Notes: generated by a model from the sequence alone, not told the origin. Shown: positions 46,229-49,696, counted from the whole stretch's first letter. The stretch: DNA of 63,375 bases, filler included, from Bigelowiella natans CCMP2755 (GCA_000320545.1; 8 parts of 8 records of this genome joined end to end with filler, not necessarily neighbours in it); one strand, 5' to 3'. Numbers and translations are program-made.

Positions 46229-47261
46229 AAAATAAGTAGAGGGGGAGGGGCGGGGAAGAGTTCATAAATATGCTGATATGCTGGCACTGCGCCCTCCTCA
46301 ACTGCACCGCCCCACCGCACGCGCAGCTGCCTACCTCGCAGAGCAGCGAGCAAAACCAACGACCTCCCTCCACCCTAGGTGCTTTCGGTCTCTTCCAATC
46401 CAAAGCTGAGCGGCCCCCTCGGCCACTTACCCCCCTCCCTGAAGTACATCGTGGCGCAGGGGACGAAGCTCGACGGCTACGTGGACGCGCTCTCCCTCCC
46501 CCCCAATCTCCGCAAGGCCTATCTCTCCGGGAACCGCCTGAGCGGCACCATCAGCGGCCATGTCTTCCGACCGAATCTCGAGGAGCTGGCATTGTCCCAC
46601 AACCGCATCAGCGGCACGATCCCACGCGCCATCGGCACGTCGGGGAACCTGACCACGCTGCTATTAGACAGCAACCGCATCAGCGGCACTCTCCCCGAAG
46701 AACTGGCCAACGTGCTGCCGCTCGTCCGCACGCTGCGACTGGATCTGAACGAAATCTCATGCGGCCTCCCCGCCCCCCTCCAAGCCCGCGGCGCCTGGCC
46801 CTCGAGGGGGGGGGCGGAAATCCGCGTGCTGCAGGGCAACGTCTTCGGATGCGAAGGCCTGGAGGGCCTCATGCGAGCTGATCGGGACGGCGACTCCTAC
46901 GTGTGCGGAAACGACGGGTTCATCGTTCCCTTCGTGCTCTTGATGGCATTTGGCGTCGTTGCGCTTCTCCTGGGCCTCGTGTCCTGGTGCGCGGCGCCCA
47001 CCATTCGCGAGTGCGCGTTCTCTCTCTCCTCGACGCTGTGCGGGTGGTGGTTTGAAAGCAGGACTCCGCTGCAGAGGGCCGCTCGGAACAGCGTTGGGGT
47101 GGCGCTGGCGATGATTGTCATGGCCGTTCTCAGCACAGCTGTGGCCATTCCTGTCTTTTCGGAGGCGCAGTCTTCAGTACAGTGCCAGTAGGATGATTGA
47201 TCACTTATGCACCTCGAATTGTGTTTCCTTCTCCTTTCTCTATCTCCCTCTCTCTATGTCC

Positions 47262-47295
<34 letters not shown>

Positions 47296-48720
47296 CGCTC
47301 TCTCGTCGCTGCTCCCTATTATTCGCCGCACGTTTTTTTGTATCTCTACCCCTCCATGTGCGTGCGGTTCACCTGGAGAGGAAAAAGATGCCCGGCGGCT
47401 GCAGTTTTAATTGACTACAAGAGGGAATAACATGCGTGTATGTGCGTGTGCGTGTGCGTGTGCGTGTTTGTGCGTGTGTGCGTGTGTACAACCAAGGTAC
47501 CTGCACGAGCCATCCCTTGCATTCGTTTCGAGAAGAGCCTCCTCCTCTTCCTACCCCGTGGGCTGGGCTATTGCAACCCTACTAATCATCTTCCTAGCAC
47601 TCGTAGCTTCTATAGTCAACTTATCTCCGACCTCGGGGACAACGCGGGGTTCCTCCTCCTCCTCCTCCTCCTCCTCCTCCTCCTCCCTCCCACGCTCCCG
47701 CGGCGGCAACCTCTTGGAAGGGGGGCGGGGAGGGCGGGTGGAGCTGTCAGTGCAGCCGAGCAGCGGCGGCGGCGATCGTGGCAAAATAATCTCCATCACT
47801 GGCCTGGTGAACAGTGACTACAACGACGCGAGCACAGAGAAGCGCAAAGCAGCAAGTAGCAAACGCTACTTCCTCCTGAAGGACGATGGTCCCAGGGCGC
47901 GAGGCAGCGGCCGTTCGACTGGGATGACCTCCTCCTCCTCCTCCTGCTCGCTGAGCCGGCTCGGGCTGGGGCTGCAGGCCCTCGCCCTGATCGTCCTCCT
48001 GGTCTCGATCATCCTCTCCACCAGCGTCGCACAGGTCGCCGTGGACGTCTCCACATCGATCTCCTCGCCCGTGAAGCACCTGCTGACCTACCTCCTCGCC
48101 GGCGCGCACCTGCTCCTCTCGCTGCTGCTGATGCCAGACCTCGCGGACCGCGTCACCCTCCTGTTCTCGAGGCTGTACAAAGAGCACGATCGCCGTCCGC
48201 GCTCTGGTAGCGCCGGAGGCCCGAATGGAGGGCCCGGGGATGCGAAGGCACTCGGCGCCGCCGCCTCTGCAGCCGAGGCTTCGGCTCAGGCGGAGAGCCG
48301 CGCCTCGAAACCACACCCGCACCGCATACACCTCTGGCTGGCCCTGCTCATCAACACGATGCTCAATACGGCGAATAGCGTCGTTGCCCCCGCGCTCGCG
48401 GAGGGTTTCGGCTACGATTCCTGCCTGAAGCCGCTCGTCGTCGCCCCCACACCTTACGCCTCCAGCACTCTGAACACCACGGATTGTGCGGAGGTCTATA
48501 ACATCGGGAAGCCTGATGAGAGCTGTTTAGGATACATGCAGCTCGAAACCGGGGCGTTCACGCCTCCCTATCATATGCGACCCGACTACTGCGTCTCGAC
48601 GCTCGTACGCGTGTTCGCGCCCTTCTTCATGGCGATGGCGTTGGAGATGCTCACGGTGGGCTCAGCCGTCATCACACTTACAAAATTGCTATTAAAACAT
48701 GTGGATGTGATATATGTATA

Positions 48721-48766
<46 letters not shown>

Positions 48767-49696
48767 TTGTGTGCGTGTGTATGTGCTTTATGTAGTTTTA
48801 TATTGTATGTGTGTACATGCAAGCATCTCAAATAAGGACTTGGAGAGATTTGCGAGCTTACTAAAGAAATGAATGTGTGAATCGTGCCTTGTGTGCACGT
48901 GCATGGGCATATGCGTCGCCATTGGTGATCCAAGCATCCACCCATCTCTCTCCCCCCCCCTCCCCCCTCCCCTTTCCAACTCAAGGTTCCGGCACTTATG
49001 ATGCTGATCCCGCTCGCTCGATCGAGGCCGCCGAAACTCGCGAAGATCCTGTTCAAGTCAAAGACGCTGTTCATGTGGCCAGCGCAACTCTATTCCCCCT
49101 GCACCCATTCGCCTGCACGACTCGCAGCACTGGGAGAAGAACTCATACTTTCGAGCTACTCGGAGCAGCTCCTCCTCCTGAGCGTGATGCTGACGATGGG
49201 GGCGGCGGCCCCCCTCGTAGCTGTCACGACAGCCATTGCGGCACTTGCCCTAGCCCTCCACCACACGCGCTTGTTCTGCACGCTACGCCGCCTAATGGCT
49301 CGCGAAACGAAGAGGCCAGTAGCCGACAGGATGCGCGATGAGAAGAAGCGTCCCGCTGCTGCCGCCGTCCCCGCCAGGGGGCGGGCTGGGGCAGAAGCGC
49401 TGATGCAGGTGGATGGGTCGTTGCCGCTAGGTGCGGCGATGATTCCGTGTGTGGGGGCGCTGGCGTTCTGGGTTGTGTTCGGTTGGGGAGGCCTTAACTT
49501 CGGCTGGATCATCGGGCTGTACACCCTGCTTTTCGCGGTGGCTGTAGCGGCGGTTGCTGCTTGGTGGGCGCGCCGCGACCACCGTGCGACGCGGGTTGGG
49601 AGTCGAGAGAACGAGCGATGGGGCCGGGCAAATCATGACCGAAATTGTGACAAGAAGAGGGCGCAGCCCATCTCGATGGGCTATCTTATATCTTAA
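44142..49696 (+). CDS. LRR ectodomain receptor with ~10-TM C-terminal domain, no kinase
   Basis: Five in-frame exons (44142-44342, 44411-46045, 46379-47187, 47497-48700, 48986-49696). They encode a signal peptide, an LRRNT cap (ALRMYYTALGGGGW...GW...DPC...W..GV.SC), more than 20 LRRs of type LxxLxLxxNxLSGTLP, then about 10 hydrophobic segments. Confidence 0.92.
44744..45598 (+). repeat. Coding tandem repeat: 5 units with exact 171-nt period (28+29 aa LRR pair), plus degenerate pairs either side
   Basis: Units start at 44744, 44915, 45086, 45257 and 45428 (next at 45599), with conserved CTCTCxGGxACGCTxCCxTCCGGxTTxGTxTGCGG. Confidence 0.95.

Follow-up and report, generated by a model that had tools for sequence, protein, structure and literature searches.

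The window analysed here is a stretch of DNA of 63,375 nt, and all coordinates are positions in that whole stretch. The piece between 43218 and 50836 carries a single gene, on the + strand (44142-49696; the window gene). Its five exons hold 1504 codons with no internal stop, and all four introns are GT..AG, in phases 0, 0, 2 and 0 (Table 1). This is the five-exon structure proposed in the initial annotation, and two of its joints, introns 1 and 4, are listed as such in assembled contigs. From the N-terminus, the product has a signal peptide, then about 24 LRRs closed by a Cys cap, and finally 11 membrane helices.

Table 1. Features of the window gene and its transcript.
Feature	Position	Strand	Basis
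Exon 1: signal peptide (~codons 1-30), then start of the LRR N-cap	44142..44342	+	hydrophobic stretch
Intron 1, 68 nt, GT..AG	44343..44410	+	joint listed in run X1
Exon 2: N-cap Cys pair and ~18 LRRs, mostly alternating 28/29-aa A/B repeats	44411..46045	+	Pfam LRR_1, E 1e-21
Intron 2, 333 nt, microsatellite-rich	46046..46378	+	adjacent record coordinates in X1, X3, X4
Exon 3 (whole)	46379..47187	+	
Exon 3, first part: ~6 plant-receptor-type LRRs and C-cap with 3 invariant Cys	46379..46920	+	
Predicted TM0, OSCA/TMEM63-type extra helix carrying the ectodomain	46922..46978	+	hydropathy and structural matches of paralog model
First cytosolic loop with short aromatic-rich helix, TM1 (~47093-47149), loop Cys at exon end	46979..47187	+	
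Intron 3, 309 nt, phase 2	47188..47496	+	inferred from contig overhangs
Exon 4: TM2 (47567), TM3 (47960), TM4 (48080), TM5 (48332), first part of TM6 (48587)	47497..48655	+	
Exon 4, cytosolic TM2-TM3 loop: 107 aa, Ser-rich, unconserved			
Exon 4, outer loop: 3 Cys and predicted beta-hairpin	~48410-48586	+	
Intron 4, 330 nt, interrupts TM6	48656..48985	+	joint listed in X1, X3, X4 (three studies)
Exon 5: end of TM6, TM7-TM8 hairpin (~49157-49290), TM9 (49427), TM10 (49505), short basic tail, stop	48986..49696	+	
3' UTR, minimum extent	49697..49840	+	transcript contigs reach 49774-49840

Contigs from public runs, whose RNA nature is a guess, are spliced, in that they skip the introns. They begin at 44042. 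At intron 3 they match up to 47187 and then overhang by 30 or 181 letters, in keeping with the 181-letter contigs that start at 47497; homologs are colinear across the site. Two alternative donors for intron 4, 48701 and 48707, were discarded because 48656 is the donor seen in the RNA contigs. A TCC repeat within exon 4 interrupts the contigs, so the coding sequence is not covered end to end by any one record. Trinucleotide runs in the exons (45770-45890, 47651-47686, 47930-47945) encode poly-Ser and poly-Gly loop inserts that are missing from homologs, and break the transcript contigs. In the public runs, which come from one organism, at most 81% of the words of 46379-49696 are present, approximately the exon share. 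Raw RNA amounts to 34 reads from one run, mostly at the 3' end (49522-49900). Past the 3' UTR, the stretch 49820-50360 contains many short palindromic words (such as GCATGC and GCGC) and no convincing open reading frame, and may be a decayed repeat. An Rfam search gave no match.

The joining of LRRs to a membrane domain does not depend on these splice calls, since a single frame of exon 3 runs from the last LRRs through the cap into the first two membrane helices. One contig, record 2 of run X1, extends from exon 1 through exon 3 and covers the LRRs, TM0 and TM1. Two assembled contigs of 4.2 kb and one genomic contig from another source each encode the LRRs and the membrane domain of a homolog in a single open reading frame, which confirms the fusion in the family. 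We regard the fusion as real with near certainty.

Part of exon 4, searched with phmmer against a set of 1.84 billion representatives, had nine matches. Those with names come from Bigelowiella natans (four distinct paralogs and a near copy) and Lotharella globosa, both Chlorarachniophyceae; the range of the family rests on this one single-sequence search and is a lower bound. The window itself probably comes from a chlorarachniophyte or a relative of one. There are at least four paralogs in B. natans, and full-length homologs are colinear in both species. Every exon of the window gene matches its homologs in order, with identities to paralog P0013 of 59, 42, 50, 27 and 35% for exons 1 to 5, and the mature part of the homologs starts at the same place in exon 1 (45-69% identity). 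The tree resolved no ortholog of the window gene, and the metagenome and viral contigs searched held no relatives. One B. natans gene model (P0016, 2981 aa) carries about 1250 aa of unrelated protein ahead of a near copy of P0008, and is probably a mis-joined model beside a recent duplicate. Another homolog, P0011 (L001 2768-6640), is an uninterrupted genomic reading frame of 3.9 kb up to TM8, compared with four introns in the window gene; its neighbours on L001 include Cupin_8 and SWIM/RING genes.

A remote homolog, P0009, scored 73 bits against a profile of six membrane domains, where 200 shuffles reached at most 7.9. Its identity is 19-21%, its GC content 62%, and its upstream LRRs are shorter and ordinary. 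The LRR frame lies directly upstream but is shifted at a poly-C run at about 377-388 (L003 3-404 and 401-2377), a shift that probably stems from a retained intron or from a slip in the assembly. P0009 suggests that the family extends past the chlorarachniophytes.

Pfam gave significant scores to the window exons for LRR families only. It found no kinase, TIR or NB domain in the window gene, in agreement with the initial annotation, and neither the window exons nor the homologs have the cytoplasmic kinase behind one membrane helix that defines an LRR receptor kinase. Most of the repeats (44590-45760) alternate strictly between a 28-residue and a 29-residue type, and across five proteins each type has an invariant Cys (35 of 35 and 31 of 31 repeats) on the side facing away from the strand. 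These Cys residues possibly form a disulfide ladder that stiffens the solenoid. The number of repeats varies between paralogs. Exposed strand positions are variable (3.1-3.6 bits), as expected of any LRR, and repeat identity is 0.46 within a protein against 0.43 between proteins, so that in these sequences the signal of concerted evolution is weak.

The C-cap has three invariant Cys and ends a few residues ahead of TM0. Eight outer Cys are nearly invariant in all, three in the cap (46760-46910) and five in the loops of the channel-like domain (47180-48595), one of them being absent in P0004. Both numbers are odd, so if all of these residues pair, at least one bond joins the cap to the loops. 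The sequences thus hint at a disulfide between cap and membrane domain.

Sequence searches of the membrane part, run exon by exon, found no credible family in Pfam, NCBIfam or the PDB profiles. No exon or homolog matched Pfam clan CL0416 (anoctamin, TMC, OSCA/RSN1_7TM PF02714) at E values up to 5. PFF1_TM and Adeno_GP19K were rejected as single-member hydrophobic matches under the cut-off. The structure models are of the natural full-length B. natans paralog P0013, with the window exons as separate rows of the alignment, and not of the window protein itself. AlphaFold modelled P0013:722-1325 with a pTM of 0.68. This first model has 11 membrane helices, largely at pLDDT 75-90, and places a beta-hairpin in the loop from TM5 to TM6. 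A second P0013 model that includes the last six LRRs and the cap (745 aa) reached pLDDT 72 and pTM 0.70; the two are of one paralog with mostly shared alignment rows, and are not independent. Hydropathy alone gives a helix count and loop pattern that fit TM0-TM10. The multi-pass domain of the initial annotation thus stands, but its count of about ten helices becomes 11 by both hydropathy and model.

Compared with 48,161 PDB representatives, the first model matched TMEM63, OSCA, TMEM16 or TMC structures in every one of rows 1-13 (Z 21.6-11.0), and the next unrelated row was a generic hairpin at Z 8.8. The leading scores were TMEM63A at Z 21.6 (rmsd 4.6, 378 residues aligned), OSCA1.2 at 19.4, OSCA3.1 at 18.0, TMEM16F at 17.5 and TMC-2 at 16.6; the longer model raised TMEM63A to Z 22.8 (rmsd 4.4, 399 aligned). 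Identity to solved members of the superfamily is 8-13%. In a Foldseek re-alignment the top 15 were all OSCA/TMEM63. A Foldseek search had TMEM63B as its best match, at probability 1.00, with weak E-values (best 9.5e-3). The GPCR and transporter folds named earlier as the alternatives to check stayed at background (Foldseek probability 0.07-0.15; GPCR rows 0.10-0.13, TM-score about 0.1), and no GPCR was among the top rows of the PDB structure comparison. A shape search of the Atlas returned nothing (TM-scores at most 0.24), and its feature search on exon 4 had no match. The structure-free language-model feature search of the Atlas reached anoctamin clusters at 0.77, which we treat as a lead only. 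Row two of that search was a cluster of 78 members (309 aa, 0.77 against the membrane domain), one of them recorded as Foraminifera; this cluster might be another rhizarian relative.

Structural alignments to OSCA and TMEM63 start at model residues 17-37, with OSCA1.2 aligned from its own residue 3 at model residue 36, and those to TMEM16 and TMC start at 60-67. OSCA/TMEM63 alignments therefore begin at helix 1 and TMEM16/TMC alignments at helix 2, which identifies helix 1 of the model as TM0. In OSCA/TMEM63 proteins the extra TM0 gives 11 helices and an N-terminus outside the cell (PMC6235563, PMC10636204). The initial annotation had proposed a TMEM16/TMC/OSCA-like domain; in the P0013 models this domain matches structures of this group only, and the proposal narrows to the OSCA/TMEM63 topology. 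With high confidence, as judged from the models, the membrane domain has the TMEM16/OSCA/TMC fold in its OSCA/TMEM63 form.

Across six paralogs the highest identity is in TM6 (41%), followed by TM9, TM7 and the TM5-TM6 loop, over a per-helix range of 18-41%. Conservation is lowest in the cytosolic TM2-TM3 loop (8% identity, 27-107 aa, pLDDT <50). Conserved polar columns are concentrated in TM3-TM7 and absent from TM0, TM9 and TM10; TM5 and TM6 have the largest moments, and polar stripes are kept on TM4-TM6. TM3-TM7 line the pore of OSCA1.2 (PMC6235563). OSCA and TMEM63 proteins keep a pore-facing TM6 glutamate, E531 in OSCA1.2 (PMC6235563). Here, the window protein, P0003 and P0004 have a TM6 Glu, the other four of the seven close sequences have Gln, Ala, Phe or Ser, and TM6-TM8 contain no invariant acidic residue. 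The first cytosolic loop of OSCAs carries an amphipathic mechanosensing helix (PMC11003742). Both models have a short helix between TM0 and TM1 (residues 64-75 of the first), which is aromatic-rich in five homologs and has moments of 0.33-0.53, with 0.35 for the window copy.

Two defining parts of the known families are missing. The TMEM16 calcium site consists of an N/E pair in TM6, a D/E pair in TM7 and an E/D pair in TM8 (PMC5868767), and it is absent here: in the window protein and close homologs TM8 is free of acidic residues within the membrane, and the acids of TM6 and TM7 are single and not invariant. The initial annotation had correctly placed both the motifs of the Cys-rich loop (48410-48600) and the YSEQ segment (from 49157). 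This anoctamin-like segment is no sign of a TMEM16 calcium site. A cytosolic TM2-TM3 domain of about 180 aa is present in all OSCAs (PMC12806904); it is replaced by the short loop, disordered in the model. Because both the calcium site and the conserved cytosolic domain are missing, this is a new family and not a member of either. On the models, we would describe it as a family with an OSCA/TMEM63-like build within a known superfamily, outside OSCA, ANO and TMC as defined.

Our preferred reading, to which we assign a probability of about 0.5, is a cell-surface receptor-channel, a channel or scramblase that is gated by its ectodomain through binding or pull. That the membrane domain conducts ions or lipids is probable. 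That the ectodomain controls gating has at best an even chance. In such a protein TM3-TM7 would form a polar groove passing cations such as Ca2+, scrambling lipids, or both. The TMEM16 calcium sensor and the OSCA cytosolic beam/dimer domain would have been lost, with the ectodomain giving the gating input instead. An outside partner, such as prey, another cell or the substrate, would be bound or pulled, moving the cap and TM0, and this movement could shift the TM6 gate as in TMEM63C, where TM0-TM6 coupling promotes opening (PMC10636204). Paralogs would differ in their binding partners. In the models, adding LRRs and cap left pTM essentially unchanged (0.68 to 0.70), and the TM5-TM6 loop gained confidence, as might be expected if cap and membrane domain had a fixed arrangement. 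A shared fold alone shows no function, so the structural match is not functional proof. Nothing specific supports an immune role; the paralogs found amount to a handful, not a large repertoire.

Other explanations must be weighed against a receptor-channel. The fold could be an artefact of a shallow alignment, the domain being in truth an unrelated multi-pass fold, GPCR-like or a transporter. With 13-14 alignment rows, a mean pLDDT of 67-72 over the two models and no sequence link to the superfamily, this deserves mention, but the membrane helices themselves are mostly at pLDDT 75-90, Z scores of 21-23 over about 390 residues stand clear of background, GPCRs and transporters do not, and neither the hydropathy pattern nor the feature-search lead to anoctamins comes from the structure model. 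We consider an artefact very improbable. The fold may instead be right and the pore silent, with the TMEM16 fold retained as a multi-pass scaffold whose role is to signal, by way of its cytosolic loops or a partner, or simply to display the LRRs. The lack of an invariant charged pore residue, the missing calcium site and the modest identity per helix agree with such a non-conducting receptor. Conservation is distributed the wrong way for it, peaking in TM6, TM7, TM9 and the outer loop and reaching its minimum in the very cytosolic loop that might signal; the polar stripes on TM4-TM6 are retained, and 11 helices would be an uneconomical anchor. We think this explanation unlikely, if much less so than an artefact.

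Slightly ahead of it, though still a minority view, we place a tension-gated OSCA/TMEM63-like channel or scramblase whose LRR arm only anchors or localises it, through adhesion or clustering at contacts or pseudopodia. The nearest structures are force-from-lipid channels, and the short helix between TM0 and TM1 sits at the position of the OSCA mechanosensing helix. Yet the amphipathic moment of the window copy is modest, the beam-like cytosolic domain of OSCAs has given way to an unconserved loop, and the link from cap to TM0 is short and conserved. A more specific form of the receptor-channel reading, which we offer tentatively and think unlikely as it stands, is a new class of ionotropic receptor in which a TMEM16-fold pore is opened directly by a ligand on its own variable LRR ectodomain, so that in protists the recognition of prey, pathogens or partners would be turned into a Ca2+ signal or lipid exposure within one polypeptide.

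The architecture and the family are new, and the superfamily is known. In the literature, where thin coverage of subscription journals means that absence is no proof, we came across neither a fusion of LRRs to a TMEM16-fold domain, or to OSCA in particular, nor any mention of the family. Seven families of the superfamily have been catalogued, none described with LRRs (PMC5868767), and a superfamily survey remarks only on larger members that might be fusions. With its large binding domain on TM0, the family forms a branch of the superfamily that is invisible to sequence searches, and other unannotated protist proteins with LRRs and many helices may be hidden channels. Known TMEM16-fold proteins are gated by Ca2+ from inside, by membrane tension or by separate tether proteins, and we know of no ligand-gated member. 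If ligand gating holds here, this would be the first such member, and one chain would do the job of a plant LRR receptor kinase and a separate OSCA channel. The family also lends itself naturally to testing the TM0-TM6 gating model and single-chain tethered gating, and its members are candidates for sensing touch or contact in algae that are amoeboid and capture prey.

Among known systems, OSCA/TMEM63 proteins are the best structural matches of the P0013 models (TMEM63A Z 21.6-22.8, OSCA1.2 Z 19.4-19.6). They share the 11 helices TM0-TM10, the outside N-terminus, a short helix in the first cytosolic loop and the polar TM3-TM7. Identity to them is 9-13%. In contrast to them, the family described here carries about 790 aa of ectodomain on TM0 and a Cys-rich TM5-TM6 hairpin, and has no cytosolic domain of about 180 aa, no RSN1_7TM Pfam match and no invariant TM6 glutamate. 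TMEM16 proteins share the TM1-TM10 fold (TMEM16F Z 17.5-18.7) and Cys in the outer loops. At the TM7-TM8 turn, a Y-x-[ED] followed by Pro 18 residues on resembles the anoctamin motif. Unlike TMEM16 proteins, the family here has TM0, a secreted N-terminus and 11 helices rather than 10, and is devoid of the conserved TM6-TM8 calcium acids and the cytosolic N-terminal dimerisation domain. TMC proteins have the same TM1-TM10 fold (TMC-1/TMC-2 Z 14.8-17.2) and a Cys right ahead of TM6, but have 10 helices, where TM0 makes 11 here, and a Pfam match to TMC is absent from this family. TMC-based mechanotransduction employs separate tether proteins, whereas the ectodomain here is in the same chain.

On the outer side, the resemblance is to plant LRR receptor kinases and receptor-like proteins, which also have a signal peptide, an N-cap, plant-type LRRs and a C-cap. 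The last LRRs in the P0013 model match the ectodomains of RGFR1 (Z 18.1), BRL2, HAESA and FLS2. The output of the plant receptors is one helix and a kinase, whereas here it is 11 helices, and the LRRs here are of 28/29 aa, alternate between A and B and carry one Cys each. Finally, LRR-GPCRs and LRRC8 (VRAC) also combine LRRs with a multi-pass membrane domain. The LRR-GPCRs have seven helices, and GPCR folds scored as background against the models. LRRC8 has its LRRs in the cytosol, attached to a 4-helix pannexin-like pore.
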